Shown here piece after piece: positions 3,446 to 54,640 of a stretch of 64,000 bases of DNA. The translations under genes were made by a program, and so were the position numbers. The DNA lies in assembly GCA_047495785.1 (NCBI GenBank), contig JBLDXI010000034.1, forward strand, positions 248,001 through 312,000, read 5' to 3'. Source of the stretch: Lepidodermella squamata (lineage: Eukaryota; Animalia; Gastrotricha). Within the stretch, counting starts at the first letter, position 1; each line of letters opens with the position of its first letter. Under the pieces are notes generated by a model that searched no databases, was not told the DNA's origin, and was given only the letters and a program-made list of their open reading frames with translations.

Positions 3446-5087
3446 ATGCACGCTGCTCGAAGCATTTCACTAGCTATCCTAATTTTCTCCTGTAGCCTGA
3501 TACCACTTATTGATTGTTGCTTGAAATCAAGCGAAAAAGCCGCAACAACGACTACAACGATAAAGCCCACTGTCTACACGAGTAAATATACTACTCATCA
3601 ATATTCTTCTGGATATTTCGAAAGATACTCAGAAGTTCTCCACAATGCATTGGCAGACAGCGTGGACAAGGCTGACGTATACCAAACCAGCGATCTCATC
3701 GCCAAAATCTACGCCGAGATTCAACTCGATGCAAACTGGCGAGTAACAGATGAGATACTGCGTTGCGGGAGTTTCATCAAAAAGCCAACCCTTCTTCACC
3801 GAGCTTCGATTTGCCCGGACCGCAGCAAAGAACGTGCGGAAATTATACAACTTCTCATCAAATACGAGGCTGATGTCAACGCAAGGGATGGTGCAAATAA
3901 CACCGCCTTGATCTTCGTAGCCAAGAATGGAAACCTAATCGCAGCCAGTGAGCTTTTGAAGGCTGGTGCTAACGCCAATTATGTGGATCAGTTCCAACAA
4001 GGAGCGTTGTATTTCGCAGCTGATGAAGGCGATAAAGATATGGTGAACCTTTTGTTACAAAACGGGGCAGATATCAAGTTGCGTGATTTCAAAGGACATT
4101 CGCCGTTCATGAGAGCGGCCTACAATGGCCATCTTGAGATTGGGAAGATTTTGCTCGAGAAAGGAGCGGATGTTAACGAGATTGCTATCAACGGGCAATC
4201 TGTCCTAATGATGGCGATAAGGTACAACCACTTTGAAGTGATCCGATGGCTGGTTGAGAATGGCGCAGACGAGAATTGCGGCAAATGTGATGAAAACTAC
4301 GGTAATTTTTTTGCATCCTGAAATTTTAGAGAATTTCAATTTTTTCATGTCTTATAAATTCAAAAAAATGAACGATAGTATCAATTGAATTTCAGAGAGA
4401 TTTTCTCAAAATATCGGAAAAAATCCCCAAGTAAAAATCCTTTGCTGAATGTTCAGGCTACGTCAGAGAACTGTTTCATTCCTTTTATTCTATCCAGTTT
4501 TGGGTTTACATTTGGGCGGGTCACCTCTGATAAGTGCCGCTGCTTATGGCGCTGAGAAAACCGTGAAATTCCTCATCGAGAAAGGAGCGAAAGTTAACTA
4601 TGTTGACAAGCTGGGTTCAACGGCTTTGTTGTATGCCAGTTCGAAAGGAAATGTCAAGACTCTAGTTGATAATGGCGCCGACTTGCGATTCACGGATAAA
4701 GCTGGGCGGAACCTACTACACCACTCTGCTATCAATCGCAACACTGAGGTAGCGAGATTTGCCGTTGAAAATAGGTTCGATGTGAATGGGGAGGATAGCG
4801 AAGGTTGGACAGCGCTGATGTACGCCGCCAAGGAAAAGATGCCTGAAATTGTTGAGCTGCTGCTAGACAATAAAGCTCAGATCGATCAAACGAACAACGA
4901 TGGTATGACGGCTCTGATGATTGCGGCGAAAAATGATCACCTGAACGTGGCGAAAGCTTTGGTGAATAGGGGCGCTGATGTGAATTTCGAGAACAAGCTT
5001 AATGGGAAAACTGCGTTAGATTATGCTGAGTATTCTATTTTCGTTGCTGACTTTCTTAGACCTATCACGAATCGGAAGTATCGCTAA
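3446..5087 (+). CDS. Signal-peptide ankyrin-repeat protein A1, 481 aa; join(3446..4301,4498..5087)
   Basis: Hydrophobic N-terminus ending LIDCC, Thr-rich linker, ~10 ANK repeats. A phase-1 GT-AG intron joins the two ORFs in frame. Confidence 0.9.
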
Positions 5088-5611
5088 TCCTCATGAAAAT
5101 TAAAATGAAAATTAAATTAAAAAAATGAATGTGAATTAATGTTATATACTGCGAAAGCTCAGAGAAAGAAAACCTTCCACCCGAAAATTCCTCGTCCATT
5201 TGGTAGTTTTAGAATCAATTCGCGATACTTAAGGTGGTCTTGTAAAGGTCATGCCGATTGAGCTTAGCATTGGTTTTCTGCTAGAAGCTGTGAAGTTCCT
5301 AGTTGCTAGAAGCTCATAATATCAATCATCTCTAAATTCTGACTCCAAGGCACGAAAAAAGCCATTTTACGATGAAAAACGTTGTTATTTATTCTCAGTG
5401 TAAAATTCCTCTGTAAAAACGGCGGTCACGCGCTAACATTTTCGCCACTTATAAGTTGTTAAAGCAAATAGATTGCCGTTAAGCTGAAGTAAAATATTAT
5501 TGTTTTTCGAACTATTGCGATCTATCGCGAAGCTGTGTGAACAGCAGGCTGAAAACTGCTCATCTCTTCTTTCACTTTTCCAAGTAAAAATTAAAATAAA
5601 AGCTCATAGCC

Positions 5612-5862
5612 ATGGCACGGCTTTTTCTAATTCTCTTGGTTTTGGTAAGAATGCCTGCTTTGTCAGTCTAAACCTATGTATTATTGCTTTACAGGCCGCA
5701 GTTGCTGCAATTTCAGTATCAGCAGCAATGGATCTGAGTTCAGAGGCTCACCTCGATGAAGCTGCGCGACAAGCTGATTGCCGGACCGATGAAGGCAAGC
5801 CAGGCATCTTGACTTCTAGCAGCTATGGATAGCGCCACCAAATGCAACGCGTACCGCTTTGA
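5612..5862 (+). pseudogene. P1-family peptide gene P2, join(5612..5644,5695..5832), probably truncated by a nonsense codon
   Basis: Same 33-nt first exon and gtaaga donor as P1; EAAR then CRTDEGKPG aligns with P1 EEAR-ATCKTKDGRDG. TAG at 5830 is TCG in the 43.5 kb copy, which reads on to CVPL*. Confidence 0.6.
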
Positions 5863-6290
5863 TGAATCTTGGATTCGAAATGAAGCGAGGAGAGGCGACC
5901 TGGGCTGCTAACTGTGCCATTTCATTATGACGATGCCTCGTTTTTGGAGAGAGAAGTGTGTCACGGCGCATTTCAGTTTCGTCATTAAAATGGACTTTTA
6001 ATTGAGCTTAAAGCTTCCAATGGCTGAACGGCCTTGATGATCAATGTAAGGGGCATGACAAATCAGTTGTGTTGGTGGTTGAAGTTAGGATACTGATCTC
6101 ATTTCTAAAGCCTCATTGAAACGCTAATAGTCAATTATTCAGCGGGCGGCAATTCAGTGCAGTTTAACTTCCATAAACGTGAATATTGAATAATTAGGAT
6201 TGAAGCCAAGCGAGATGAGGTAATTCGAGCATTGAAACCAGTAGCAATGCCTCATTTCACGAATTCCAGTTTCATTACAAACCAAATACT

Positions 6291-8154
6291 ATGAAACACG
6301 CTGTTAGCACAAGGCTTATCATTGTAGCGATCCTAATTGGAACCTGGACCCTTGCAAGTGAATGCTGTTTCAAAACTAGCGATCACCCGTCAGCAAAGGA
6401 AGAGGTCAGAACAGTGGAAAAAGTAGAATCCTCGAGATGGGGTGGGGTTGGTGCGTTTGAGTTTTTTCAGCCCCGGAATTATCGGACCAAAGGGTCCCCT
6501 GTGGTTTTTTGGTTTTTCTTGCAAGGTCTTTAGAGCCCCCCTCTCTCTCCTGTACCCCCGGTACTTCGCGCATTGGGTCAGAATTTTCGAACAGAGACTC
6601 TTTTGTCTTTTCATGTCTCAATGCGCGAAGTATCGTAGCCGCCCGTTCGCAAGGCAAAGAAAACACTCCCCTAAAACACAGGGGGTGTAAAAACCATTTG
6701 GTCATGGAATTCGGGCCGGGACATACCCGGGATCTTTTGAGTATCCTACTTCGGGCACTGTCATGCCTCATTACTGAAAGATTTATTGCAGGGTGAGACT
6801 GAAGCATTATTGGATGAAAACAGCCCATTTGCAGCATACAAGCGATTGGCTTCCGCCTTAGAGGAGGCCGATGTGAATCGAGTTCGCGAGCTGATCGTCG
6901 AGATCAAGGCTCAAAACAATGGCGAGTTCAACGCAAACTGGCGGGATGAAGACTATCATCGACCATCCTGTAAGCTGAATGCTGACAATTCAACCCTACT
7001 CCACCGCGTTTCGTACTGCGAAGGCCTAGCTGAACAACGGGCTGAACTCGCTCAACTTCTCATCGATAACGGGGCTGATGTTAACGCCAGGGAAAACATG
7101 AATCGAACAGCTTTGATCTTCGCAGCAGGCGCTGGTCATATGCCTGTCGTTAAGGTTCTAGTTAACGCTGGTGCTGATGTCAATGCTGTGAATAAATTCG
7201 AGCAAGGAGCGTTATGGCAGGCCTCATTCAAAGACGATAAGGAAATGCTGAATTATCTGCTCGATCAGGGCGCTGATTGGAGGGTGCGCGACTACAAGGG
7301 TCATTCGGCTTTTACAACGGCTGCGTCTTATGGGCATTACGAAATTGCGAAGATTTTGCTAGCTAAGGGGGTAGACATCAACGAGGTGGATGACTTTGCT
7401 AGGTCTGTTATAATGAATGCGGGTGAGCAGAATCAGTTTGATATCATTAAGCTGTTGGTGGAAAATGGAGCTGATGTTAACTTTGACAACAAAGACGTTC
7501 AAGTTAAATCAGGTAAGAAACTCTACCGGGTTTACTTCAAGAAACGAGAATTATTTAATTTTTTCAACAGGCCCTCACTTGGGTAGCTCGCCTTTGATGA
7601 TCGCCTCTCGTTTCGGAGACGCTGCAACCGTGAAGTACTTGATCGAGAAAGGTGCCAATGTGAGATACGTCGATAAACACGGCCTTTCAGCGATTTTGGA
7701 CGCAAATTCAGCTGAGACCGCTAAACTGCTCGTTGACAATGGTGCCGATATTCAATTCAAGAATAAATACGGGCAAACCCTTCTTCACCAGGCTGCGACT
7801 AAGGGTAAAGCCGAAGTCGTGAAGTTTGTTATTGAAAACGGGGTCGATGTCAACCAGAGAGATAAGGAAGATTGGACAGCTTTAATGTACGCGGCTAGGG
7901 AAGGTTACACCGATGTTGTCCGACTTTTACTGGACAATAAGGCGGAAGTTGATCTGTTCAACAATTATGGCTGGACTGCTTTGATGGTTTCAGCCAGAAA
8001 TGGGAATATCGATGTGGTCAAATTGCTGGTTGAAAGAGGCGCGAATGTCAATTTGAAAGGACGCATCGACAAACTAAGGCCATTGGATTTAGCAGTTGAA
8101 AATGGGAGATCAGATGTCGTCCAATTTCTGAGGCCAATTACGGCCAAAAATTGA
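6291..8154 (+). CDS. Signal-peptide ankyrin-repeat protein A2, 472 aa; join(6291..6404,6792..7512,7571..8154)
   Basis: Exon 1 MKHAVS..ASECCFKTS; phase-0 and phase-1 GT-AG introns give a continuous frame; ANK repeats. Confidence 0.9.
6412..6525 (+). repeat. Dispersed repeat in A2 intron 1
   Basis: gttttttcagcc(c)ggaatt..gacca..ggtc..ctgtgg..ttttcttgc recurs at ~151-213 and inverted at ~51495-51580. It is absent from the short paralogous intron at 44069. Confidence 0.6.
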
Positions 8155-16067: not shown

Positions 16068-17775
16068 ATGCACCTGGCTAACTTAAGTTCGCCGAGACTC
16101 GTCATTTGTATCAGCGTTTTGTTACCTGCAATCGATTGTTGCCTCTCATCTATCGAGAAGGAATCTGAAGAGGTCCTCGAAAAAGAGGTTGCCACGATAA
16201 ATGTGACAACAGATGATCCCAACCAAGGTCTTTATCAGAAATTAGCTTTGACCTCGCAGAAAGCCGACATCAATCGAGTTCGCGAACTAATCAGAGAAAT
16301 CAAAAGTAGAAGCAACGGATCTTTCAATGCGGATTGGCGCGAACAGGAGCATGCAATCTTTTGCGAATACGTCAATTTTCAAAATTCAAGTTTACTACAC
16401 CATGTTTCAGCCTGCTTCAATGAAGACGAGAGACGGGCAGAAATCGCTCGAATTCTTGTTGATCAAGGCGCAGATGTTAATGCAAAAGACTCCGCTGGAG
16501 GGAGCCCTTTGCTCTTCGCAGCCAAGCTTGGCCATTTCGAGCTGACAAAAACGTTAGTAAAAGCGGGTGCTGATGTCAATGCTGCAACTCAATACTACCG
16601 TCGGACGCCGCTCATGGCAGCGGCAAGAAACGGCGACACGAAAATCGTGACATATTTGCTCGAAAATGGGGCAGAGGTCAATTGGCGTGATAGAAGCGGA
16701 GAATCGGCGTTGTTCAAAGCTACGCCATACCTCTCGACGGCAAGAATTCTGATTGCGCATGGCGCCGATGTAAACGCGATGGATAACGAAGCCGATTCGG
16801 TGCTTATGGAGGCTGCACGGAGTTGTAATTTTGAAGTGATAAAATTGTTGGTCGAGCATGGGGCGGATGTCAATTTCGACAACAGAGAATTTCAAGCTGA
16901 AACCCACGATTTTATAATTCGAGGTAAACTAGTTTTCGAGCTGAAATTCGTAAATGACCGTTAACAAGTGAAAAAAGGAATTACCTTGGAATTTTCGAGG
17001 AAATCTTGAAATGTGTGCTGACTTGAAGAGGGACAATTCTTAGATTCCAAGATGCTCCTACGCAGTTTGTCTGTACAATTTGGATCTTTCTCATTTCAGA
17101 TCTCTAAGGGGCTTCCACCTTTCCACCTTTCCACCTTTCTTGCAAGAGACGAGCCCTTTAGTCATCGCGTGGTAGGTTCAGAAAATCTCAAAACGTTTTA
17201 ACTCTGAAAAATGTTCTTGAGCTGGATATTATTTTCACATGGATTTTTCAGAAAATTATTCTTCATTTTCAGATCCACATTTTGGTGGCTCCCCTTTGAT
17301 GCGCGCTGCTCAGCATTGTACTTTGGAAGCAGTTAAATATCTGATCGAAAAAGGAGCTAACGTGAACTTTGTCGATACGGATGGCTTGCCAGCTCTTATC
17401 TACGCGTTGTTCCACAACTCGCCGTCTCGTGCTATGATAGAGTTACTCGTTGAAAATGGCGCCGATGTACGATTTACGGATAAGGACGGGCGAACTATCC
17501 TCCACCGCTCTGCTTTCATGGGTAATGCTGAAATAGCTGACTTCGCCATTGAAAGAGGGCTGGATATCAATCAGAAAGACAACACTGGATCAACACCTCT
17601 GATGATTGGGGCTGAATACGGCCGTCTCAATTTCGTTAAACTGCTGGTTAAAAAGGGTGCTGACGTCAATTTGAAGAGCAGCGATCTAGGAAAAACGGCT
17701 TTGGATTTTGCCATCGAAAAAAATGAAACTGAAATTGCTGACCATCTTAGGCCTCTCACTAATGGAACTAAATAA
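16068..17775 (+). CDS. Signal-peptide ankyrin-repeat protein A3, 452 aa; join(16068..16923,17273..17775)
   Basis: MHLAN..AIDCCLSS start, FNADWR cap, ANK repeats, conserved phase-1 intron. Confidence 0.9.
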
Positions 17776-17866
17776 AGCAGCTTAACTGTGGCGCGCCCTT
17801 CCACACGCGTCCCTCTTCTCGCCATTAAACTGGTTCTTGCGTTGTTCAGTATTCCTTATATCTTTA

Positions 17867-19442: not shown

Positions 19443-20829
19443 ATGCACTTAACTGCTAGCATAAAATCCCTGTACCTCGTAATTTGCATCGGTATTTTGT
19501 TACCAGCATTCAATTGTTGCCTCTCGTCTAGCGAAAAGCAATCTGATGGGTTTGTTTTCGTCCCGGAAAAGGATGTTGGTTCAATCAAGGTGCCATCGAA
19601 CCCTCATCAAGCCCTTTACCAGCAATTAGCTCTGGCCGCAGAGAAAGCCGACATCTATCGAGTTCGCGAGCTAATCAGAGAAATCAAATATCGAAACAAC
19701 GGACATTTCAATGCCAATTGGCGCGAGAAGGGCAATGTGCTATCCTGCGAATACGACATCAAAAACTCCAATTTACTGCACCGTGTGTCTGCCTGCCCTG
19801 GTCAGGGAGAGAAACGGGCTGAAATCGCTCAAATTCTTGTCAATCACGGGGCTGATGCTAATGCGAAAGACTCGAATGAAGCAACTCCTCTTCACTTCGC
19901 GGCTCGGGTTGGGCATTTGACAATAGCAAAGGTCCTATTAAAAGCCGGGGCTGATGTCAATGCTGCTTTTGGCTTTTACAGGCAAACACCGCTGTTGCTT
20001 GCTGCAAATAGAGGCGATAGGGAACTCTTGAAATATTTCCTAGAAAATGGGGCTAATTTGAAACACCGTGGTAACGACGGACATTCACCGTTGATGAGAG
20101 CTGCGCTATACAACCACATTGAGACGGTGAGGATTCTGCTTGGGAAAGGGGCTGACGCGAACGAGATGGACAACAACGCCCAATCGGTGTTGATGAATGC
20201 GGCGCGGAATAATAATTTTGAACTTATCAAATTGCTGGTCGAGAAAGGGGCCGATGTTAATTTCGACAACAGAAATGTTCAAACGAAAGGTAAATTGGAA
20301 ATTGGGTAGATGGAAGCTGATTTTTCTTTTATTTTCAGCTCCACATTACGGCGGCTCGCCATTGGCCCGCGCTGCTACTTATTGCGATGTTAAAATAATC
20401 AAATATCTAATTGAAAAAGGAGCAAACGTGAACTTTGTCGACTCAGATGGCTCAACAGCTCTCTTCTACACTATGTACTTTGCAAATTCACGCGCTAAGG
20501 CCGAGTTACTCGTTGAAAATGGAGCCGATGTGCGATTTACGGATAGCAACGGGCGAAATCTCCTCCACCGAACTGCAATCAACGGTAACGCTGAAATAGC
20601 AGAGTTCGGCATTGAAAAAGGGCTTGATGTTAATCTGAAAGACAATCATGGATTCACGGCTCTGATGATGGCGGCTGAATGTGGCCGTCTCGAATTTGTT
20701 AAACTGCTGGTCGAAAGAGGCGCTGATGTCAATTTGAAGAGCACTGATGAAGGCAAAACAGCTTTGGATTTAGCCGTCGAAAACAATAGAAATGCTGTTA
20801 CTGACTACCTTAGGCCTTATACTAAATAA
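19443..20829 (+). CDS. Signal-peptide ankyrin-repeat protein A4, 445 aa; join(19443..20289,20339..20829)
   Basis: AFNCCLSSS leader; a 49-nt phase-1 intron joins the ORFs; ANK repeats. Confidence 0.9.
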
Positions 20830-36830: not shown

Positions 36831-37069
36831 GAATCGTGTTTCCATCGGAAGCTCATTTACATAATGAATGCAACAGGAAACAGAGTTTTGTTACCGCGGG
36901 TTTGGCCACGGGACGGTCACGGCGCTGTCTAGCTGCTCTGTGTGTCTGAGTGAAACGGAAAAATTAAAAAAAATGCTTTGGATTCAGTATATTAATGATC
37001 CCACCTAATTATCTATGCTTAAAAATCCGAACCGGTAGCCGAGGCCTCATTATTCCTATTTCTGAAAAC

Positions 37070-39456: not shown

Positions 39457-42263
39457 ATGAAACCGATATTCAGCACCTGTTCATTTGCTATCGTAGTTTC
39501 GATAAGTTGCTTGGTACCAGCTGCTCAATGCTGCCGACGATTCGTCGACGAGCCATCTTCCACAGATAAAGAGGTCAGTTTTCTAAAAACCTGGAGAAAC
39601 TTAGCCTTTTCCTAACCTGATTCATTACGGAAAGGCTCCGATCGTAGTAAAAACTATCGATGCAAACGATACCTTGTATGAGGAATTGCGATTCGCTGTT
39701 GATGAGGCGGATGTCGATCAAGTTCGCCACCTGATTGGCGTCATAAGAACACGAGACGGAGGTGCATTTAACGCCAACTGGCGAGATGAGAAAGCGTATA
39801 AAACTTGTCAAACGTCCAGGCCGAAAATCTTCAATACAACTCTACTAATCCGGGTCGAAGCCTTAGATTGTGATGGCCAACTTGAGAAGCGTGCGCAGAT
39901 TGCTAAAGTTCTCATCGATAATGGCGCTGATGTTAACGCTACAGTTGCAACAGATCAAACTGCGCTGTACTTCGCAGTAGCCTATAATCACTTGCCTGTT
40001 GTCAAGGTACTGGTCGAATCTGGAGCCGATGTTAACGCTCTTTTTGGTCCTTGGAAAAAATCATTAGTGGCCATGGCTCTTGACGGCGTCCACACTGAAA
40101 TTGTCGAGTTTTTGATTGATAACGGGGCTCATTGGAACGTATATAATGTATTCGGCTATTCGCCTTTCATGAGAGCTACTAGTTCTGACTACGCCCGGTT
40201 AGCGAAGTTCCTACTGGCGAGGGGTGCGGATATCAACGAGGTGGATGAAGGTTGCAAGTCTGTGTTGATGAATGCTCGGCCGCATTTAGAAATGATGAAG
40301 TGGCTGGTCGAGATGGGGGCGGATGTTAATTTCGACACAAGAAGCTTACAACGTTGTAAGTTCATAGTTTTATCGAAAAAAGTGCTGCTGGCAAAGTTTG
40401 CGAAATACAGGAGATCCCAAACCCCAGCTGGAAAGGTCCAGGCAAGAAAACCTTTGGGAGAAGGGACAAAATTTTTTCGAAAAAGCTCAAAAATTCACTT
40501 GCTAATCATCTGAAAGCTTATTCGCTGCCATATTTAGATTGGACATTGTTTGCATTTTGTTATTTTTCTTTGGACTTCCAGGCTCCGAATCTGGTGGCTC
40601 GGCTTTGATTGAGGCGACTAGATATTGCGACGTGACCCTCGTAGAATACCTGATCGAAAAAGGTGCGGCAGTTGGAAACATCGCCGAAAACAATGCATTG
40701 ATGCATGCGGCTTGCTGCAGGAAACCTGATATTGCGAGACTTTTACTGGACAATAAGGCCGATATAGATATGATGGACAAGAACGGCATGACGGCGCTTA
40801 TCTTTGCGGCTCAAGATGGAGGCATTGAGGTCGTTAAATTTCTGGTCGAACGAGGTGCTGATGTCAATTTGTCTCTGCATGGGAAAACGGCCCTGGCTCA
40901 AGCGATTGAGTACAAACAACGTGAAGTAGTCGAGTATCTTAGACGTATTCTAAATCTTGAGGATTCAGCTGAAACTATTGCTACGAAAGCGAAAGACATG
41001 GTGTACGAGAAATTGGCATTCGCTGTCGAAAAGGCGGATGTCGACCGGGTTCGCGAGCTGATTGCGGAAATCAAAGCCATTTACAAAGGTGAATTCGACG
41101 CTAACCGGGTTCTGCACCGTGTTGCAGCCAGTGGAGACCGCAGCGATTTAAGGGCGGTGATCGCTCAAATTCTCATCGATAATGGGGCTGATGTTAACGC
41201 TACAGATGAAAGTGATGAAACGGCGTTGAACTACGCGGCAGCTCATAATCACTTGCCTGTTGTCAAATTATTAGTTAAATCTGGAGCCGCTGTCAATCCT
41301 GTCCTGCCATCGGCTATAGCGCCTTTGGAGAAAGCTGTCTTTTTCAATAATATCGAAATCGTTGAGTTTTTGCTCGATAACGGGGCTGATGTGAAGCGGC
41401 GTGGTCGTTTAATGCGGCGATCGCCTTTAGCGACAGCTGTTATAAAGGGAACATTGCGAATGGTGAAGATTTTGCTGGCGAGGGGCGCCGATGTTAACGC
41501 GGTGGATGACTATAACCGGTCTGTGTTGATGAATGCGGCGGTTTATAATCGATTCGAAATGATCGAGTTGCTGGTGGAGAATGGGGCGGATGTTAATGAC
41601 GGCGGTAGTGATTCTCCATCCGACACAGTTATGGATGAATCGTTTGATAATTGGAAGTCCTTTGTTATTTTTCCAGGCGTGGCCCAATGTTGCTTGACGT
41701 TGAGTTTTGCTGTTAAAAATGGAAACGCAACTACGGTAAAATACCTGATCGAAAAAGGCGCCAATGTGAAATTCATCGAAAAATGTGGCTATTCAGCCAT
41801 TTCCGCCGCAAAATCATACGAGATTGCAAAACTGCTCTTTGATAATGGAGCCGACATGCTGCTGAAGGATAGCATGGGCAATTCCATTCTCAACTCTGCT
41901 GCATTGGATGGAAGAGAAGGTGTTGCAAAATTTGCTATTGAAAAAGGAGTTGATATCAACGCCATAGATAATGATGAAATGACAGCCTTAATGTACGCGG
42001 CTGTCCGTGGTCACGTCGGAATGGTTAGACTTCTATTGGACAATGGGGCAAGCATGACTCTGCTGAACCGCGATATGAACACGGTTTTAATGATTGCCGT
42101 GAAACGTGAACAAATTGAAGTCGTCAAATTGCTGGTGAAACGAGGCGCCGATGTCAATTTCAAAAACCCTCTCACCAAAGTAACGGCCTTGCATTATGCA
42201 ATTGTTAACGACATAACAGAGATCATTGACTTTCTTAAACCTCTGACTACAACTCAAAAATGA
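39457..42263 (+). CDS. Double-length signal-peptide ankyrin protein A11, ~815-839 aa; join(39457..39573,39635..40355,40582..42263), optional intron 41605..41676
   Basis: AAQCCRR leader. A second YEKLAFAVEKADVDRVRELI cap occurs mid-ORF, followed by another full ANK set. Confidence 0.85.
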
Positions 42264-43375: not shown

Positions 43376-43545
43376 ATGAAACCGATCATTCGTGCCAGCT
43401 TATCGTAGTTCTGATTGGTTGCTCGATAACAGCCATTGTCAGTGTAGCCAACTGAGAACTTTGCTACTTCATCGTCAAACTATGAACTATGGCATGCAAA
43501 GCAGCTATGGATCGCGCCAGCTGGAGCTATGCGTGCCGCTTTGAA
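43376..43545 (+). pseudogene. Ankyrin exon-1 remnant fused to a P2-like peptide gene remnant (P3)
   Basis: atgaaaccgatc..ccatt leader, then QSSYGSRQLELCVPL* and downstream sequence matching 5818-6290. Confidence 0.65.
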
Positions 43546-43951
43546 TCTACGATCTAGATTCGAACTGAAGCGAGGAAACGCGACATGAGCTGCTGAATGT
43601 GCCATTTCGTTCTGACGATGCCTAATTTGTAGAGCGAGAATTGTGTCTGGGTGCTTATCAGTTTTCGTCATTAAAATGGACTTTTAATAGCTGGACAGCC
43701 TCGATGCAAGAGGCATACCAAAGCAGTTTGTTGGTGGCTGAAGTTAGGATGCCGAAGCTCATTTCTAAAGCTTCATCGAAACGCTAACCGGCCATGATAA
43801 CAGTGTAGTTAAATTTCCATTGAAGAATAATTAGAATATTGAATAATTAGGATTAATTGAAGCGCGGTTGAAGGCTGTTGGTATTTGAAGCACTGAAACC
43901 ATTAACAATGCCTCATTTCACACATTCCAGTTTCATTACAAACCGTACACT

Positions 43952-45041
43952 ATGAAACACGCTGTTATTAGCACAAGGCTCATCACTGTAGCGATCCTAA
44001 TAGGTACCTTGACCCTTGGAAGTGAATGCTGTTTCAAAACTAGCGATCGCCCGTCAGCAAAGGAAGAGGTCAGAAATTTTGAAGAAAGGCTCAATTCATG
44101 CCTTATTGATGAAAGATTTTGCATTTTGCAGGGCCATGAAGCACTATGGGTTGAAAACAGCCCATCAGAAGCATACAAGCATACAAGCATTCGGCGCTTA
44201 CAGCAGCTGTTACTTATGGGCACTTCGAAATTGCGAAGATTTTGCTAGCTAAGGGGCAGATGTTAACGAGGTTGATGACTTTTCTTGGTCTGTCATGAAT
44301 GCGTGCGAGCAGAATCAGTATGATATCATCAAGCTTTTGGTGGAAAATGGGGCTGATGTTAACTTCGATAACAAAGATGTTAGAGTTAAATTAGGTAAGA
44401 TATTAAAGCGGGTTAATCTTGATTAAACGGACATTACTTAGTTTTTTTTTAAACAGGCCCTCACTTGGGTAGCTCGCCTTTGATGATCGCTTCTCGTTTT
44501 GGAGACGCTGCAACCGTGAAGTACTTGATCGAAAAAGGCGCCAATGTAAGATACGTCGACAAACACGGCCTTTCGGCGATTTTGGATGCTAACTCACCCG
44601 ATACCGTCAAGCTGCTCGTTGAAAATGGAGCTGATATTCAATTCAAGAACAAATACGGGAAAACCCTTCTCCATCAGGCTGCTATTAAGGGTAGGAGGCG
44701 CAGTCGTGAGATTTGTTATTGAAAACGGGATCGATGTCAACCAGAGAGATAAAGAAGACTGGACAGCTTTAATGTTCGCGGCCAAGGAAGGTCACGCCGA
44801 AATTGTCTGGCTTTTGCTGGACAATAAGGCTGAAGTCGATCTGTTCAACAATTATGGCTGGACTGCTTTGATGGTTGCAGCCCAAAATGGAAATATTAAT
44901 GCCGTCAAATTCCTGGTTGAAGGAGGTGCGAATGTCAATTTGAAAGGACGCGTCCGCAAACTAAGGCCCCTGGATTTCGCAGTTGAAAATCAAAGAACTG
45001 ATGTCGTCGAATTTCTGTGGCCAATCACGGCCAAAAATTGA
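43952..45041 (+). pseudogene. Ankyrin pseudogene A13 (A2 paralog)
   Basis: ~460-nt deletion in exon 2 at ~44185 and a frameshift near 44695. Confidence 0.9.
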
Positions 45042-45712
45042 CCCAATATTTGACCGTATCAGAAAAACTTCATTTAATTTGTTCATCGAGTATGGTGTCG
45101 GTCAGAAATGTGGGGCTCCAGCACTAAAGTTTTCCGAAATATGGTTTCTCGAGTTATCCAGTCTTTGTTAGAATCTCAATATTCTGGCACCATGACTATC
45201 AGATAGATAGATCTCCATATTGTCTCCAAAAGGATCATCTGTATCTTGGGAGGTACTGAATTTGATAGCGAACAATGACAAATTTGATGACATGTGAAAA
45301 TAGGGATCGACATACGATGCTTCAATAGGCAGCAATGCTTTCCTGGTTTCAGTTCAACAGTGAGCGAGCTAGGATCCTTGAGCAAGGAGTTACTTTCGGG
45401 TATTTCGCGGGGCCTCTTCACGCGCCGCAGAACCTTCGCGTCCAGGTTAATGGACAGGGAAACATCGACTTTGACCATTAATGAAGACTTTTTCGCCGAG
45501 CCTATTATCGCTGGTCAGGCACTGTTTGTCATTGCTAACAGGACGACCTTTCCCGAACGCAGCAGCAGCAATAACAGCCTATTAACAGGTTGCGAAGTAC
45601 AGGGGTGCAGTCGCAACACCCCAGCTCCGGGACTCCAACCAGAAGTAGGCAGAAATGCTGAAGAAACCACATGGGTGACCCGTTGTTACTGCTAAACTTC
45701 TTTTTTTGATAA

Positions 45713-46139
45713 GCCCCAATTTGGGTGGCTCGACATTCGATTCAAGAATAAAAATGGACAAACCGACCTTCACCAGGCTGCTACAAGTGGTAAAATCGAA
45801 GTCGCGAAATTTGCTATAGAAAAGGGGGTCAATGTCAACCACATGGATCAGGAAGATTGAACAGCTTCAATGTACGCGGCACGGGAAGGTTACGCGGATG
45901 TTGTTCGACTTTGCTGGACAATAAGGTCGATAAATCGATCTGATCAACAATTATGACTGGACAGCTCTGATGGTCGCAGCGAGAAATGGAAATTTTGAAG
46001 TGGTCGAATGGATGGTAGAAAGAAGCGCGAATGTCAATATGGAAGGGCGTATTGACAAGAAACGAGCCCTGGATTTCGCCGTTCAACATCAAAACACTGA
46101 GGTCGCCGACTATCTCAAGCCGATTACGACCAAAAATTA
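45713..46139 (+). pseudogene. Decayed ankyrin last exon
   Basis: Frameshifted GQT.LHQAA..EVAKFAIEKG..ALDFAV..YLKPITTKN*. Confidence 0.8.
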
Positions 46140-46343
46140 ACCTGTTTTCTCACGTAGTAGAGTTTTCTTTGCCCTTATCATTGTGCAAAATGTGAAGTTC
46201 CGTTGAACCTTTGTGGAATTTTCTGGTGAATGGAAAGATACTTGGTACAGGGTTAATTTTATATTCAACAAAGCGGCTGTGATGCTGGATGTTTTGTGTG
46301 ATACTTGGTTTTTTTTCAAGTTTTACAGCAAATATCAATTGTA

Positions 46344-47726
46344 ATGCACTCAACTAGCGTGAAATTACTATACCTAGTCAGTTCTATCGGCTATTTGATA
46401 ACTGCAATAGATTGTTGTTTCACCTCCAGCGAAAAGCGATCCGATGACTTCTTTTTTGTCCCTGAAAGAGATGTTGCTTCAATCAAGGTGCCAACTGATC
46501 CCCATCAAGCCCTTTACCAGCAATTAGCTCTGGCCGCAGAGAAAGCCGACATCTATCGAGTTCGCGAGCTAATCAGAGAAATCAAGTATCGAAACAACGG
46601 AATTTTCAACGCGAATTGGCGCGAGAAGGGAAATGTGCTATCCTGCGAGTACGACATCAAAAACTCGGCCCTATTACACCGTGTATCAGCCTGCCTTGAT
46701 CATCGTGAGAAACGGAAGGAAATCGCTCAAATTCTCGTCGATCACGGGGCTAATGCGAATTCGGAAGAGTCGGATGGAGCAACTCCCCTTCACTTCGCGG
46801 CTAGGATTGGGCATTTGGCAATAGCAAAGGTCCTATTAAAAGCCGGGGCCGATGTCAATGCTGCTTATGGTTTTTACAGGCAAACACCGCTGATGTTTGC
46901 TGCAAGTAGAGGCGATAGGGAACTCGCAAAATATTTGCTGGAAAATGGGGCTGATTTGAAATGGCGTGATAACTACGGACATTCTCCATTGATAAAAGCT
47001 GCACTTTTCAACCACCTTGAGACGGTGAGGATTCTGCTTGAGAATGGCGCTGATGTTAACGACATGGATAACAATGCCCAATCGGTGTTGATGAATGCGG
47101 CTAGGCATAATGATTTCGAATTGATCAAGTTGCTGGTCGAGCATGGTGCAGATGTTAATTTCGACAACAGAAATATTCGAACAAAAGGTAAATTGAGAAT
47201 TGTGTGGTTGAAAGCTGATTTTCTTATATTTTCAGGCCCGCACTATCGTGGCTCGCCATTGATCAAAGCTGCTACTTATTGCGACGTGAAAATAATCAAA
47301 TACCTGATTGAAAAAGGAGCAAACGTGAACTTTGTCGAGTCAAATGGCTTGCCAGCTCTTATCTACACATTGTTTTTTGCAAGCTCACGTGCTAAGGTTG
47401 AGTTACTCGTTGAAAACGGCGCCGACGTGCGATTTACGGATAGCAATGGGCGCAATCTCCTTCACGAAACTGCAACCTACGGTAACGCGGAAATAGCAGA
47501 GTTCGCCATTGAAAAAGGGCTTGATGTTAATATGAAAGACAAGCTGGGATTTACGCCGCTGATGATAGCGGCTGAAAGTGGCCGTCTCGAAGTTGTTAAA
47601 TTGTTGGTCGAAAGAGGCGCTGATGCCAATTTGAAGAGCACTGATGAAGGCAAAACAGCTTTGGATCTTGCGGTCGAATGCAATAGAAATGCTGTTGCTG
47701 ACTACCTTAGGCCCTATACTAAATAA
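46344..47726 (+). CDS. Signal-peptide ankyrin-repeat protein A14, 444 aa, paralog of A4; join(46344..47187,47236..47726)
   Basis: AIDCCFTSS leader; 48-nt stop-free intron at the conserved position. Confidence 0.9.
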   Translation: MHSTSVKLLYLVSSIGYLITAIDCCFTSSEKRSDDFFFVPERDVASIKVPTDPHQALYQQLALAAEKADIYRVRELIREIKYRNNGIFNANWREKGNVLSCEYDIKNSALLHRVSACLDHREKRKEIAQILVDHGANANSEESDGATPLHFAARIGHLAIAKVLLKAGADVNAAYGFYRQTPLMFAASRGDRELAKYLLENGADLKWRDNYGHSPLIKAALFNHLETVRILLENGADVNDMDNNAQSVLMNAARHNDFELIKLLVEHGADVNFDNRNIRTKGKLRIVWLKADFLIFSGPHYRGSPLIKAATYCDVKIIKYLIEKGANVNFVESNGLPALIYTLFFASSRAKVELLVENGADVRFTDSNGRNLLHETATYGNAEIAEFAIEKGLDVNMKDKLGFTPLMIAAESGRLEVVKLLVERGADANLKSTDEGKTALDLAVECNRNAVADYLRPYTK

Positions 47727-47879: not shown

Positions 47880-48248
47880 ATGGCCACTTGCCGGTTATCA
47901 AGACAGTAGTAAAATCCGGAGCCGATGTGCATCCTTTGAATAGTTACGGAGTTTCGTTGTTTATGGCTGCTACCGACAAGCATCGAAATCATCACATTTT
48001 TGCTTGACAACGGGGCTGATATGAAGCTGCGTGGTTACATGGGCCGTTCTCCGTTTATGACAGCCGCTGTGAAAGGCAATCTTCGGCTGGCACAGACGTT
48101 GTTTGCGAGGGGCGCCGATGCTAACGACCTGGATGACGAAGGCCGGTCTGTTGCAGAGTTGAATGATTTTAGAATGATCAAGTGGCTAGTCGAAAATGGG
48201 GCGCATGTTACTTATAACAAACGAGATTTAAAACACCTTGGAGGTTGA
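47880..48248 (+). pseudogene. A5-like exon-2 fragment
   Basis: GHLPVIK..KSGADV..GNLRLA with a stop; no leader and no last exon. Confidence 0.8.
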
Positions 48249-49218
48249 ATATTGCTTAATCCGGCAGATTAACTGCTTATCACTTGTCAGCAATCCGAAA
48301 ACTGCGCGAAAAACCCAGTAATTACTACCCCATTGTCAAGTGAAATTGGGTTATATTGGGTTATATTGGGTCTATAAAAAAATGGTACTTTGTGAATCAG
48401 AATTAGGTACTCCATTCAAGGGAAGAAATAATGTTTTATTAAATCATGGTATGAAAGTTCCCAGTTGCAAATTAAAAAGTAAACGATGCCATTTCTAACT
48501 AGCCGACGTTCCGGATGTACAAATGAAGTTTCGCGTCGACGGCTGACCAAGACGGAATTGCATTCAAAACCTACCTGCAGTATTATATGTCTCAACTGAG
48601 ATTGACTGAAATTTTCTGATAGCTATGACATTGGAAACTAGACGCCTAAATTTTGTTAACAAGAAGCGTCTCGTTAAACAACTTTTTGGGGTTTTGAACA
48701 GGTTGCCCTTATCACGGGGTATCATCCCTCTTTGCTTAGCAAGACAGGACTAGAAAAACGAAAATGTAGCCAGTAGATTAACATAGTCAAAATGCGAAAC
48801 GCTCGATCCTCTAATATTGAAACAACCTCGCGGTGTAATTTTTAAGTGACATTTTCGATAATCGATAACTCAAGTTTGAAGAGATATCCGTCACCACTCA
48901 GCCAGTCGTAATACGCGTGGGCGAAACAGAGAATGGTCTGACAATGTTCACGGGAGATGCGTGTTTCTACGATCCTACGCAGTCACTTTTCTCGATGCAC
49001 TCTGAAGCTAATAGAAGGATCTGCAACTTCTATTTTCCAAGGTTTTGAACATTACATACTTTCAATAAAGACTAGGCCTGAAATTGCCATTAGCTTCCAC
49101 GTCATTATCAGCCACTTAACGTTTGAGTGTAATGAATAATTCAACAAAAATGGCCTCGCACGCATTGAAATGACAATATTTGAAGGGCAAAACATTAACT
49201 CAGATTTTTTAAGGCACC

Positions 49219-52200
49219 ATGTTAGAATTTGCTTGTGCTGTTTTCTTGCTAAGCATTTTGAGTCTCGCTGATGCTCAAGGCGTATCTCGCTGCGGGACAC
49301 TGGTCCCACAGTTGTCGCTGTTCAACCACGCCGATGCCGACCGATCTACCAACTGGGAATTGAACCAAATGCCGGGTTTGAATGCAAGCATCTCGCCGGT
49401 GAATGCAACTCGCCTCTCCCTGGACACCATCTCAAAGACAAATGGTGCCATATGGGCGAAAAACGTTAGCGATTTCTTGGCATTAAAAAAACTTCGATAA
49501 CTGTCTTTCTTACTTATACCTAGCCTTTCCCGCTGACCAATTTCTACATCGAACTATGGGCTTACATTGACTCACACTCTCCAGGCGGTGCAAGCGATGG
49601 TGTAATGATCGTGATTGGCAATAATGCATTTTCCACCCCGTTCAATTCTAGTAAGTACACTCTAGGTGAAAATAACTATTTTCGAAATGTTCATCGTTCT
49701 ACTGTTAAATTATGGAAGGATTCAATGATAGTAGACATTCTCCTCGGATTTCTTCCCACAATCGCACCGAATTAAGGAGAATGTTAAGCTTCGAAGATAG
49801 ATGAGCCGTGCATTACAGTAGTCAAAACTAAACGCTGAATATTTCCGTAATGGCGGGGTATTTTATTTCTGACCATGCCGAATCTGACCATGCCGGGTGT
49901 GAAATACGATGGGGAATGAGGGATGAGGAGTATCGTACCCTCAGTTCGGCAGGCCAAGTTAGAAAACATCAAAAAGGCCTCTTCAATTGTAACATTTGCG
50001 CCCGGAAATATCGCCTAGTTCGAACATCCTACTTCGCACACTAGTCCCAAAAATTGTATGAGACGGTGCGGCTCGCAGAGCATCAGTATTGACGTGATAT
50101 TTTTTTAAAAGGCGCAAGGTCCAACTGATTTTTTGCAATATAAAAGTGTGAATATTCACACTTCTAGCTCACTTTTTTCGAATAAATATTTTTGAAGCTA
50201 TTTTTGAAGTTTGTTGATTTGAAACTTTTTTAGGAATTGAACCTACCAATTTTTTTAATTGAACCCACCGAGAGAATTAAAATTCAACGGGAAACCCGGA
50301 ATACCCCGATGGTAACTGATTTGATCATTTTCGGTATTTAACCAGGTTGCACAGAATTCCCCCGGACTTATTTTTGCAAAAAAAAGATATTATTATTTGA
50401 TGACTATTTTTTTAATTTTTTAGAAGTTAATTTTACTGGCTATTAGATGTTAATTCATCGCTCATTCTTAGAGTTTCCGTACCTTTGTGCAGATTCGTTG
50501 CTAGCATCACGCTGTGTAAATATTTAAATCTGTGTAAATAACCCGATTTGCGATATGCGCAGCTATTTTTGTACGAGTGGTAAATTCCGATACAAGTAAT
50601 TACCTGCTTTACCAGGCAATCCTTTTGGGATAAGCTGGCCGTCTTTCACTGGCATGGCGATCCATTTTTTTCCTTTTTATGGGACCTTCTTTTCGTGGAT
50701 GAGCACAGCGCCTAACGGCAACAACGAGCCCTACTGTGGCTGGGGTGGCACAATCTACTGCAAAAATAACATAAACGCGACGTCATGGATGATCAACATG
50801 CCTGTCAAGATTCAAATTCGCGTGGAAAACGGCAACAAAGTAGCGATTGGATCATGCCTTTCAGATGGCGCATGCATAGGACCTTTCACCGGTTCATCTA
50901 GCTATTCCCTGGCTAGCTCCTTCACTGACAAGCAAATGACGTTCGGCATTGGTGTTAAATCCGGGTGGAATACTCAAACCGTCGACATCCTTAGCTTAGG
51001 TGTCTACGACTGCTCGATTGCAGCGTCGCCGAACAAGTAATGTGTAGGAATAACGAGATTTTCACACTTAATCAATCAAATTTATTGAAGAGTTCAATCG
51101 TGCGGAACTTTGATGCCGCAATTTTCGCTGATTAACCCAGCGGCCGATCGAGCAGCTAACTGGGACTATTACCCACACTTGGGTATGAGCCTGGCTGGCC
51201 AACCTGCAAACACAACACGCCTCGCATCCGAAGGCTCAACAAATGTCGAATCAGGCCTGTGGAACCGAAGCGTAAGAAACAACTGATTTTAAATGAGAAC
51301 ACCCTGCCTTGTTGGAAAAAACGGTTTAAAGCCGAAATTGCGATTCTATAAAATACTCTCACTATGCGGCATTCTGACGGCTAAAATGAGGAAATAATCA
51401 TAAAGCAAACTCGAAACTCGCAAATTCAAAGCCGAAATTAGCAACGAGGATAAGGGACAAAAGTGAACTCGAAGGGTCACCCTTTATCCTTAGGAAGAAA
51501 TCCCCAAAAAAAACCACAGTGGGACCCTTTGGTCACATAAATTCTGGGCGGGAAAAATACCTCGAGGATCCTACTTCCCCAAAATAGCAACCCAGGCCGA
51601 AATTTCGAGCTTTTTGGCTATTTTTGAGCTTTTGAGGTCTTTTGAGGTTTTTCACCCCATTTCGCGATTACCCACCCCCAAATTCGGTTGATTGCTTCAG
51701 AATGTTTGTATTTTTTTGCGCAGCCATTCAGCAAATCGAGCTTCTACATCGAGCTGTCCGTAAGTGTGACCGACCTGGACAACGCACCATCGCCAGGAAT
51801 CGCCCTCCTTATCGCTAGTAACCAATCGATCGGGCGACCATCTAACCTGCGTAATTTTCCCTGCGTACTCTAACACTCACAGCAGCGTTTTCAATTGCAG
51901 AAAATGGCTTCGGCCTGGATTCAAGCAAATTCATAGGATTTTCGGTCGCATCCAACTTTTTATCGGGTTTTCTAAGTTCGAAAATTACACCAACTCCTCC
52001 TGGCGGCTCTCTGTTCCCTGGCACTTGTAGTACCCCAGATAGCACGGTCTGCACAGCTCTCAATTCAACAACAAAAAACAACACGGTTCAATACCAGATT
52101 AGGCTTGACAATGGCGTGTCATTATCGGTAAGAATTCATCAGATTTAATTTGTAGCAATGAATGCTGTCTTTAACAGATTTCAGCTTGTTTGTTTGATGG

Positions 52201-53548
52201 CACGTGTTTCGGACCTTTCACAGGAACCTTGCCAACCTCTCTAGCAACCTTGATGGCCACTCAAGGTATGATGCTGGGCTTGGCAACCTCAAGTGGCAGC
52301 ACATCAGACACAATCGATGTGATCAGCCTTGCAGTCTACAATTGCTCGCAACAAACTACAAGTAGTCCGATTTCGACGTCAACTTACAAGCCGCCCAAAA
52401 CTACGACAGGTTTAACTCATTTTGCGACCGATTCAGAGTCGGAGAGCGCGTTCCCAATTCCTGGGTTGGAGAGAGGCAATCACATGCCTACTGTAGATAT
52501 CCAGGATTTGCTTCCGTGTAGAACCATCGCCGCAGACCTCCGTTCACCAGACCCGAATACGAAGGTCTACGCTACGCTAACGGTTGAGCGGTTGTCTTAC
52601 GTTGACCAGGCTGAGCAGCAAGTTTCGCTGTGGGGCGGTCTGCTGCTTCAGTGGATGGTCAGCACGTGCGGAGCTAATTACACGGCTCCCGAGGCAGACG
52701 ACAAAGAACGACTGACTTCGACACGCCGGACCGACATATGGCGACCTTCGATGGTTTTCGCTAACGAAACACCCGAATTCGACCTCGCGAACCCTGCTTG
52801 CGGCGAGTCTATGGACATTGCCTACTACCCTACCACGCCGAACCGCACGTTGTTTTTCCACTGGAACCGCGTTGGAACTTTCCCAGCGAGTTGCGAAATT
52901 GACTTGACCAAGTTCCCATTCGACACGCAAACTTGTGAAATGACAATGCTAATGTTTGAATCTGCCTATTTCATCCGAATCGGTGGAATGAATGTCGTTC
53001 CCAGGGGAGACCTAAAATACGGTGTCTGGGCTTTCGATTCGTTGAAGGTCACCAGAGGAAATGTTACCAGTCCTATTAGAACTTCTGATCAAGTTTCCTT
53101 TGCAAAAGTGAAATTCATATTCAAACGTAGCCCTGGTTACTACATCGTGAATATGATTGTGCCCTGCTACGTCCTGATAATTCTTGCATTCGCAACATTC
53201 TTCATGGACGCAGCCGCACCCGATCGGCCTGCAATTTGTTGCACCATCATGTTATCGCTAATTGTAGCTCAGTCAGATGTACTCTCAAGCGTGCCGGCAA
53301 CAAATCAGGAGATTTTGTACGCTAATTACATCCTTGGTCTCACTGGAACTATCGCTTGCATCGCCTTCTACCAGATCGTCATGTCTCGGCTCGTTTCGAA
53401 AGACGAAGCTAAATTTGAGACGCCTGTCAAAGTAGCCGGCGGATTTTCGTCCAGTATAGCCAATCTCCTCGATATCCTTGCCGGTATGGCAGCATTTCAA
53501 GGCGTTCTTGCGATTAACCTGTACTTTATAAAGACGATCGTTATTTAA
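49219..53548 (+). CDS. Tandem lectin-like domains fused to a Cys-loop ligand-gated ion channel subunit, 899 aa; join(49219..49464,49524..49650,50616..51036,51091..51271,51724..51850,51901..52127,52178..53548)
   Basis: Signal peptide; six GT-AG introns, all phase-compatible; two copies of CGTL.PQ.SL..NW..N.TRL..G.W..PF...FYIEL..C..DG.C.GPFTG..T.D..SL.VY.CS; then DIWRPS, Cys-loop CEIDLTKFPFDTQTC and four TM helices. Confidence 0.8.
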
Positions 53549-54139
53549 CGGCCTAATTTCTGACAGAATCTCAGGAAGAACACTGGATCGTATCTCGAGA
53601 ATTTGTTGCAATTTGAAGTTGTCTATAAAATCGGTATTTTTTGGACGGTCTCAGACTTCATGTATTAGAATTTCAAGAGTGGATGATGGACGTATCGCTT
53701 CTGATTACATATGATTCATCTTGAAAGATTGAGGAATAATAAAAAAAAATTGGAATCGATTGGTTCAAGAGAACTGTAAATAAAGCTGCTTTTTGTGTCT
53801 ATTGTTTTGTATCTTTGAGAGGTGTCTGTTTTTTGAGCCGAAAATAAAAAACGAACTGCTAGGATGACGCCTCGATCTGCCAATATTGCTCGTCTGAAAT
53901 TCAGCTGAATGGCAATATTCTCCGCGATTTGCTAATTTGCATGATTAATCATAAGTACAGGAATCAGTTATTTTGTTCTTTCGAGTGCGAGACGAACTCT
54001 GGTCACGGTGTTCTCTATCAACTCTGTGTGCGTTGGCTGTGTAAATGTTTGTTAAATAAAATGCATTTGATTCATTAAAAATGCTGAATTATTAATGATC
54101 CCATTGAATCCAAAACGGCCAGCCGAAGATTCATTTTTA

Positions 54140-54640
54140 CTGATGCTTTGTATCTGTTCATTTGCTATCGTAGTTTCGATCAGTTGCTCGATACCAACTA
54201 TTAAATGCAGCCTAAAATCTAATGACGAGTCATCGACTGATCAAGAGGTCAGTTTTGTAAAATGCATCAGGTTGATACCATCGACACATTGTGCGAGAAA
54301 GTGGGATTCGCTGTTGATACAGCGGACGTCGATCTAGTTCGCGCGCTGACTGCCGTCATCAAAGCTCGAAACAACGGTAAATTCAACGCGGATTTTCGGC
54401 TGGAGAAAACACGCCTAATTAATTCATCTCTTCAATGCCACCCTGCTACACCGTATCGCAGCTTGGGACTGTTTACGCCCAAGTGAGAATCGCTCGGAGA
54501 TCGCTCAAGTTGTCATCGATAATGGGGCTGATGTTGACGCTAGAGAATCGTTCCATCGAACAGCGTTATACCTCGCGGCTATCAGTGGCCACCTTCCTGT
54601 TGTCAAGGTACTAGTCAAATCTGGATCAGATGCGAAGCTC
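54140..54640 (+). pseudogene. Ankyrin gene remnant A16
   Basis: Leader CSFAIVVSISC..DQE|gtcag, then EKVGFAVDTADVDLVR..NNGKFNA, frameshifted and truncated; a further scrap at ~55115-55165. Confidence 0.8.

Follow-up and report, generated by a model that had tools for sequence, protein, structure and literature searches.

What kind of protein is made from a tandem array of ankyrin-repeat (ANK) genes that each open with a hydrophobic leader, and where would such a protein act? The question is raised by a stretch of 64,000 nucleotides (nt) from the gastrotrich Lepidodermella squamata (contig JBLDXI010000034.1, positions 248,001 to 312,000), here called the window and numbered from its first letter. 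In animals, the ANK repeat is the standard example of an intracellular adaptor fold. From the sequence of the window, the array is interpreted with moderate confidence as a lineage-specific metazoan multigene family whose products would be targeted to the endoplasmic reticulum (ER), are probably secreted and soluble, contain an ANK solenoid as their sole domain and are putative binders.

ANK-coding DNA is confined to the + strand between positions 3446 and 55238, where tblastn, run with one paralog and then with all of them, gave 19 merged blocks. Gene models built by hand from conserved splice sites yield nine intact genes with GT-AG introns and seven decayed copies, namely one full-length pseudogene and six fragments (Table 1, which also gives the labels used for individual copies). 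The intact products are 444-481 amino acids (aa) long, with the exception of c11_12 (815 aa), a head-to-tail fusion in which the unit c11 has lost its stop codon, along with two repeats, and continues in frame into the linker of c12, a unit that has no leader of its own. Each intact gene encodes a leader, a pair of Cys residues (CC), a disordered linker, a helical N-terminal cap and one continuous ANK solenoid. A first-pass annotation of the same DNA had described nine intact and about nine decayed co-oriented paralogs with these features and with roughly 9-11 repeats. Its nine intact genes were all recovered on the + strand; decay was likewise found, in the seven copies just mentioned. A leader with CC is present in 9/9 intact genes, in some of them on a separate upstream exon, and the cap is present in all units, while the repeat count had been set slightly low: including caps there are 11 repeats in c3, c4 and c15 (subfamily A2) and 12 in the other units, c11 being two short. 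The predicted absence of catalytic and transmembrane domains also holds, in that Pfam searches of the products returned ANK families and no non-ANK domain, and the leader is the sole hydrophobic segment.

The case for entry into the secretory pathway is made by the leaders. They start at a conserved Met (MH… or MKP…), carry a net charge of +2/+3 in the n-region and continue into a hydrophobic core of 12-17 residues (Kyte-Doolittle mean 1.5-2.9), usually with a Pro 4-6 residues ahead of the CC. Each of the 11 leaders that remain readable ends in [D/E/N/Q]-C-C. Type A leaders consist of MH…, the hydrophobic core and (A/L/V)(I/F)(D/N)CC(L/F)xS(S/I)EK; type B leaders, clearest in c5, c6 and c10, consist of MKP…, the core and (A/V)IECCC, a pattern from which the leaders of c2 (MKHAV…SECC) and c11 (MKP…AAQCC) deviate. 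The n-region and h-region have the properties of a classical eukaryotic secretory signal peptide, and a cut between the two Cys residues fits the (-3,-1) rule, applied by hand, in 10 of the 11 leaders (-3 is I, S or A, and F in c4; -1 is C). C-terminal to the CC, the flank has a net charge of -4 to 0 in eight of ten leaders, c1 (+2) and c8 (+1) making up the remainder. The intact products contain no KDEL motif, GPI-like tail or second hydrophobic segment. Judged by these sequence features, the leader resembles a classical cleavable signal peptide. A bacterial lipoprotein signal was considered as well and rejected, as a D, E, N or Q precedes the first Cys, there is no lipobox ([LVI][ASTVI][GAS]C) and the genes hold 1-3 spliceosomal introns.

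Two further observations concern the end of the leader. Directly after the CC, the type A copies c1, c3, c4, c8, c9f and c15 all keep S-x-E (SSEK or SIEK), although these type A subfamilies share just 42-47% overall identity; S-x-E could be a piece of the cleavage region or of a modification motif. Elsewhere in the window, a 272-aa open reading frame (ORF) on the - strand (60059-60877), which has no Pfam match, begins with a leader that resembles a signal peptide and has CC at its end as well (…VFVSPCCSG), and continues into long Ser/Thr-rich, mucin-like tracts. By this ORF, CC at leader ends may be a habit of this genome.

Behind the leader lies a disordered linker of about 10-45 aa whose sequence is little conserved from one subfamily to another. 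The linkers of c1 and c8 are rich in Thr (TTTTT(T)), a composition that would be typical of O-glycosylated, mucin-like stalks. The cap that follows is specific to the family and consists of two helices with the motif LA.A.EKAD..RVRELI…FNANWR; it is succeeded by a beta-hairpin insertion, which makes the first repeat unusual, and then by regular ANK helix pairs, with G27 anchors 33 residues apart. All copies stop a few residues past a conserved …L(R/K)(P/S)xT. Membership in the ankyrin-repeat superfamily is clear (Pfam Ank and Ank_2 to Ank_5): c15 matches Ank_2 at E = 2e-70 and Ank at E = 9e-60, and all copies tested pass the gathering score. An AlphaFold2 model of the c4 exon-1 product, with the paralogs as alignment, is disordered over residues 1-51 (predicted local distance difference test, pLDDT, <50) and mostly above 90 over residues 54-280. 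A single-sequence model of the c15 read-through product has 11 helix pairs spanning both exons. Its internal confidence collapses in just three places, namely the region of the hairpin insertion (104-120), a short stretch at 333-337 and residues 274-302, around the intron-encoded residues; the last of these supports the splice model. Two Cys residues in the cap/repeat-2 region (C102 and C118 in c4) are jointly present in seven units (c1, c2, c3, c4, c8, c11 and c15) and jointly absent from c5, c6, c10 and c12. This co-occurrence, which represents one or two independent loss events, hints at a disulfide.

The closest solved structures are designed ankyrin repeat proteins (DARPins) and consensus ANK proteins, which match the c4 query with a TM-score of about 0.65 and 31-37% identity (Foldseek, phmmer). 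DARPins head the best fold and sequence matches in the PDB, together with ankyrin-1/2 and NOMPC and, further down, latrotoxins; these matches cover query residues from about 124 onward only. DARPins and the family alike have an N-cap, internal repeats and a C-cap, and variability between the paralogs peaks at positions 2, 3, 5, 13, 14 and 33, which are those randomised in DARPin libraries. DARPins are synthetic, have 4-6 repeats and lack a leader, whereas the family is natural and has 11-12 repeats, a hairpin-inserted first repeat, a leader and a stalk. The resemblance to DARPins proposed in the first-pass annotation is thereby borne out for a capped, consensus-like solenoid with variability on its concave-face positions; binding itself is putative. 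Among animal proteins, the latrotoxins (alpha-latrotoxin, latrocrustotoxin and latroinsectotoxin) also carry long ANK arrays and act outside the producing cell, and they match the family at E ~1e-49, over ANK repeats only. Latrotoxins are about 1200-1400 aa long and possess a large N-terminal pore-forming and connector region, helical in nature, with about 20 ANK repeats behind it. As the annotation had anticipated, the family has no counterpart to it: just ~50 disordered residues precede the ANK part in the c4 model. Membership in the latrotoxins was rejected on this ground, on the absence of any non-ANK Pfam domain and on the restriction of the latrotoxin matches to ANK repeats.

The history of the array can be read from comparisons among its copies, in which the pseudogene c10 was aligned with X at its three stops. 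Paralog identity ranges from 36 to 81%. The tree contains a well-supported type A clade (c1/c8 plus c3/c4/c15) and a type B core of c5, c6 and c10; c2, c11 and c12 lie on more isolated branches. Self-BLASTN gave DNA identities of 83% for c4 and c15, 82% for c1 and c8, and 73-76% among c5, c6 and c10, and indicated that the leader exon of c2 and its upstream DNA were co-duplicated with the c2-like remnant at 43500-44075. An adjacent pair of one A2 and one B copy occurs three times: (c4, c5), (c9f, c10) and (c15, f47). The family has grown by tandem and segmental duplication, including that of a repeated two-gene A2+B block, with turnover by birth and death. The whole-gene ratio of nonsynonymous to synonymous substitution rates (dN/dS, Nei-Gojobori) is 0.22-0.54; dS is 0.37-0.47 for the youngest pairs and reaches 1.4 for deeper ones. 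It follows that the duplicates are old and have been preserved by purifying selection, and a decaying, non-functional array is ruled out by dN/dS values well below 1 across dS up to 1.4. The linker, with a dN/dS of 0.15-0.21 in young type A pairs, is therefore not a free spacer.

Against this background of constraint, change is concentrated on the predicted surface of the solenoid. Column entropy is highest at the DARPin-randomised positions, with 1.25-2.3 bits for surface positions against 0.8-1.5 bits for the positions compared with them, and the residues enriched there are R, K, Y, Q and S. The proportion of nonsynonymous to synonymous changes is higher at surface than at framework positions in deep pairs (odds ratio 3.1, p = 5e-7); in young pairs the odds ratio is 1.6 (p = 0.08). 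The putative binding face has diverged functionally, short of demonstrated positive selection. Of the diversified extracellular recognition or effector system suggested at first pass, the leader-CC-linker-cap-solenoid architecture and the surface variability stand; secretion itself, ligands and any role in immunity, symbiosis, venom or mucus are conjectural.

Searches for relatives gave a two-part answer, in which the ANK part has generic matches and the N-terminal part has none in the collections searched. Residues 1-125 of c15 (leader, linker and cap) had no match in a collection of 5.8 billion proteins that includes annotated human and model-animal proteomes, within the limits of a search by shared 5-mers among proteins of 253-805 aa. 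Whole-protein queries retrieved only generic ANK proteins at 25-39% identity. About half of the best of these carry N-terminal leaders; most are source-unnamed proteins, and the named ones are mostly bacterial. A cap-only hidden Markov model (HMM) scored 60-83 bits on intact members and 36 on c10, and no more than 9 bits per matched stretch on 269 fetched ANK proteins, all of which lack the cap. Scans with the cap pattern were negative in JGI metagenomes, 185,579 prokaryote genomes and IMG/VR viral contigs. A HMMER profile of the cap plus repeat 2 was uninformative on relatives of the cap, since all 150 matches listed were giant multi-repeat ANK proteins aligned at profile positions ~47-101 only. 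The homolog search called for at first pass has in this way left the leader and cap without relatives in these collections and the ANK part with generic ones. These results leave room for the occurrence of the family in other animals.

The idea that extracellular ANK proteins are nearly without precedent, from which the first-pass annotation had started, proved too strong. In Phytophthora sojae and other oomycetes, proteins with a signal peptide and ANK repeats make up an effector class that has expanded (PMC11139960). In Plasmodiophora brassicae, 92 ANK proteins are putatively secreted; they belong to the dominant effector family of gall-forming plasmodiophorids (bioRxiv 10.64898/2026.10.14.759018). 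In grape phylloxera, ANK ranks by number among the top three known domains of secreted effector candidates (PMC7376646). The oomycete and plasmodiophorid proteins resemble those of the window in combining a signal peptide with ANK repeats only, in the clustering of many paralogs with transposable elements in dynamic regions and in their variable repeat number. These organisms belong to other kingdoms, however, whereas the window is metazoan-like (a Cys-loop receptor and short spliceosomal introns), and the CC leader end and FNANWR cap are particular to the family; the likeness noted here is one of architecture, beyond generic ANK sequence. Phylloxera is, like L. squamata, an animal whose genome encodes lineage-specific signal-peptide candidates that often carry ANK; it is compared here by the domain statistic of the paper alone, and the function of its candidates is unproven as well. 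Bacterial periplasmic or secreted ANK proteins (e.g., from Brachyspira) also have a signal peptide directly ahead of an ANK cap, with a long array behind it, and they are among the best-scoring matches. They differ in having intronless genes, a generic identity of 25-39% and neither the CC motif nor the FNANWR cap. AnkB of P. aeruginosa is a further example of this bacterial group. Characterised animal cases of extracellular ANK stay rare, and the family has a signature of its own.

Alternative readings of the array differ in the fate of the leader, the role of the proteins or their origin. The leader might be an uncleaved type II signal anchor that tethers the solenoid by its N-terminus at the cell surface or in the lumen of an organelle. 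Its positive n-region would give the required N-in orientation, the leader is predicted to be helical in the single-sequence model of c15, and the apolar stretches of type B leaders become longer when the polar PINSPSS part is counted. Hydrophobic cores of just 12-17 residues that contain Pro, along with a c-region that obeys the (-3,-1) rule in nearly every leader, make such an anchor rather improbable. Less likely still is a cytosolic ANK adaptor held at the membrane by a short N-terminal hydrophobic segment and S-palmitoylated juxtamembrane Cys residues (N-out/C-in, as in synaptotagmin). An invariant CC right after a hydrophobic stretch is a typical context for palmitoylation, free Cys residues within the repeats suit a reducing compartment, and the ANK domain would then be found where it usually is. 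The core is nevertheless too short, and with its Pro ill suited, for a transmembrane helix of this kind, which would need at least about 18-20 residues, and the charge distribution is the reverse of what N-out/C-in needs, with positive charge on the N-terminal flank and a neutral or acidic C-terminal flank in most copies. The Thr-rich, mucin-like linker of c1 and c8 likewise argues for a lumenal or extracellular location.

If the proteins are indeed exported, they might be effectors or venom-type proteins that a gland secretes into a host, prey or symbiont and that act on or in foreign cells. This is the strongest of the alternatives, although unlikely in itself. The family displays the hallmarks of the oomycete, plasmodiophorid and phylloxera families, namely a signal peptide with ANK only, restriction to a lineage, and a tandem arrangement in clusters that include pseudogenes and remnants of transposable elements (PMC11139960; bioRxiv 10.64898/2026.10.14.759018; PMC7376646), and bacterial ANK effectors provide a further parallel. 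The very divergent receptor encoded beside the array would fit a fast-evolving, possibly parasitic lineage, and the conserved promoter elements specific to subfamilies (see below) suggest co-regulated, tissue-specific expression. However, no translocation motif was recognised in the family, and the copies, which duplicated long ago (dS at least 0.37), are held by purifying selection and are not fast-evolving. A claim about origin, which is compatible with any of the functional readings, is that the ancestor of the family was a bacterial signal-peptide ANK gene, taken up by horizontal transfer, which acquired introns and multiplied afterwards. The best whole-protein matches with a named source are mostly bacterial ANK proteins, and about half of all best matches start with a Sec- or lipoprotein-type leader directly before the ANK cap. 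Bacterial top matches are, however, expected because the database is dominated by bacteria, and the identity, low as it is, is restricted to consensus ANK repeats. The family cap is missing from the fetched proteins (≤9 bits, against 60-83 within the family) and was not found by the pattern scan of prokaryote genomes, and the family leaders, with D/E/N/Q at -1, lack a lipobox. Bacterial descent is the least probable of the alternatives.

Several observations weigh against the family of secreted, solenoid-only proteins that is preferred here. The identification of the leaders as signal peptides relies on rules applied by hand. A number of copies have scattered, unpaired-looking Cys residues inside their ANK helices, which is unusual for extracellular proteins, and the c4 AlphaFold2 model places the co-occurring Cys pair at a hairpin tip and at the end of helix 1, a topology that offers no obvious support for a disulfide. 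Lastly, surface dN/dS is 0.3-0.96 and never exceeds 1, so that a repertoire of the arms-race style is not demonstrated.

Taking the reading of a secreted ANK family as it stands, a path from gene to function can be proposed. A cleavable signal peptide would direct the ANK protein into the secretory pathway, where cleavage by the (-3,-1) rule would fall between the invariant Cys residues ([I/S/A/F]-[D/E/N/Q]-C|C) and leave an N-terminal Cys. Once exposed, this Cys could, speculatively, form intermolecular disulfides or carry a lipid. Next to it, a flexible stalk of ~10-45 aa, Thr-rich and mucin-like in c1 and c8, would present a rigid ANK solenoid of 11-12 repeats. The concave face of the solenoid, which differs between paralogs at the DARPin-randomised positions, would be expected from its fold to bind protein targets; candidates are extracellular molecules of the animal itself, microbes, and host or prey cells. 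A more far-reaching version is that animal germline-encoded, diversified secreted ANK solenoids serve as extracellular recognition molecules, a natural DARPin-like counterpart to receptors based on leucine-rich repeats (variable lymphocyte receptors, VLRs), and are oligomerised or tethered through the N-terminal Cys that cleavage exposes. This proposal is doubtful and less probable than the effector reading.

Table 1. Copies and remnants of the ANK gene array, in order along the window.
Copy	Position	Strand	State	Exons	Product (aa)	Remarks
c1	3446-5087	+	intact, 2 exons	3446-4301, 4498-5087	481	leader MHAAR…LIDCC; Thr-rich linker; 12 ANK repeats; subfamily A1
c2	6291-8154	+	intact, 3 exons	6291-6404 (leader), 6792-7512, 7571-8154	472	
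c3	16068-17775	+	intact, 2 exons	16068-16923, 17273-17775	452	subfamily A2; 11 repeats
c4	19443-20829	+	intact, 2 exons	19443-20289, 20339-20829	445	exon-1 product modelled with AlphaFold2
c5	22182-23706	+	intact, 3 exons	22182-22286, 22348-23059, 23123-23706	466	type B leader MKP…AIECCC
c6	25386-26893	+	intact, 3 exons	25386-25490, 25546-26254, 26307-26893	466	type B
fragment	28260-28858	+	fragment			copy of c11 upstream region, leader and cap, 94.8% DNA identity; ends after cap beside retrotransposon remnants
c8	34003-35884	+	intact, 2 exons	34003-34864, 35301-35884	481	sister of c1, 80% aa identity
c9f	35992-36899	+	decayed			c4-like 5' part; leader intact, then frame lost, stop in cap, truncated
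c10	37070-38594	+	full-length pseudogene	37070-37162, 37240-37957, 38008-38594		type B; 3 in-frame stops
c11_12	39457-42263	+	intact model	39457-39573, 39635-40355, 40582-41604, 41677-42263	815	two-unit in-frame fusion
f44	43500-45066	+	decayed			c2-like copy, frame-broken; 75-85% DNA identity to c2 upstream/leader and 3' half
f45	45645-46146	+	fragment			C-terminal, last repeats
c15	46344-47726	+	intact, 2 exons	46344-47187, 47236-47726	444	48-nt intron; sister of c4, 81% aa identity
f47	47880-48266	+	fragment			internal, c5-like, ~78% DNA identity
f54	53928-54706	+	remnant			c11-like, past Cys-loop receptor gene; leader decayed (…PTIKCSLKS, CC lost); cap partial; further trace at 55080-55238

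The genes share a simple exon structure. Their introns are 48-436 nt long and of the GT-AG type, with one or two per gene and three in the fused c11_12. A phase-1 intron common to all copies lies at the same repeat junction, after repeat 6 (…GADVNFDN…|…GGSPL…). In c15 and c12 this intron is by chance free of stops and in frame, and therefore reads through to give the long ORFs at 46305-47726 and 40539-42263. In c2, c5, c6, c10 and c11 the leader has its own upstream exon, which ends in …(Q/K/E)E|GT(C/G)AG at a phase-0 intron. Upstream of the genes, conserved elements follow the subfamilies and are probably subfamily-specific promoter elements. In type B copies, the ATGs at 22182, 25386, 37070 and 39457 are preceded, at a distance of ~60-95 nt, by a conserved element of ~35 nt, ATTCAGCAT(T)TTAATGATCCCACTGAATCAGC, which contains an internal inverted repeat; its position is shifted at 54140. 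The type A2 copies have ATTCAACA…GCGGTTAAC…GAGCGC in common, and c1 and c8 have CAGGTTAATTGTAAATT. An acceptor-like TTTTACAG is located 14 nt upstream of the ATGs at 19443 (c4), 46344 (c15) and 36305 (the c9f remnant), and it could be the end of a 5' untranslated region (UTR) intron or a trans-splice acceptor.

The principal neighbour of the array is an uninterrupted ORF of 452 aa on the + strand (52190-53548), which encodes a very divergent metazoan Cys-loop ligand-gated channel resembling the nicotinic acetylcholine receptor (nAChR) and the glycine receptor (GlyR). It matches Pfam Neur_chan_LBD and nAChR and GlyR chains in the PDB (E ~1e-13), holds a C-x13-C loop containing FPFD, a feature that points towards a cnidarian or bilaterian, and has no match in the 5.8-billion-protein collection. 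Over its first ~55 residues it has a 51-aa motif in common with an ORF further upstream on the same strand (50654-51040; 45% identity, E = 1e-14), and this may reflect an additional N-terminal module or one more exon; a suspected similarity of the module to the ORF at 1594-2259 was not found. Inside the array, ORFs at 29355-29819 (-) and 30484-31008 (+) resemble by eye the C-terminal tails of ORF2 in retrotransposons without long terminal repeats (non-LTR) and have no Pfam match; they occupy the gap adjoining the truncated c11-like fragment. Downstream lie a proline-rich ORF on the + strand (61575-62414) with ~12-aa tandem repeats (PETPVPVRPAPV; Tandem Repeats Finder period 36/66, ~10 copies), an ORF (62688-63257) with a short collagen-like stretch of GPP and with an acidic/basic tail, and a 12-bp tandem repeat, CTGATCCTAACC, at 56090-56486 (~33 copies, 70% matches). 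The GC content of the window is ~42%, and Rfam and tRNA scans of it were empty.

The concept of a secreted ANK protein is not itself new, as families with a signal peptide already exist in bacteria, oomycetes and plasmodiophorids and probably in phylloxera. The arrangement of ANK alone behind a leader is rare in animals and known in bacteria and some parasites. With their short genes, one or two introns (three in c11_12) and a clear leader and cap signature, the proteins of this family are readily testable. If the reading is true, the family would supply natural, disulfide-poor binder scaffolds that are already suited to extracellular conditions, and a maintained animal family that sends bare ANK solenoids to the secretory pathway would give this fold a part in extracellular recognition or effector functions among metazoans.

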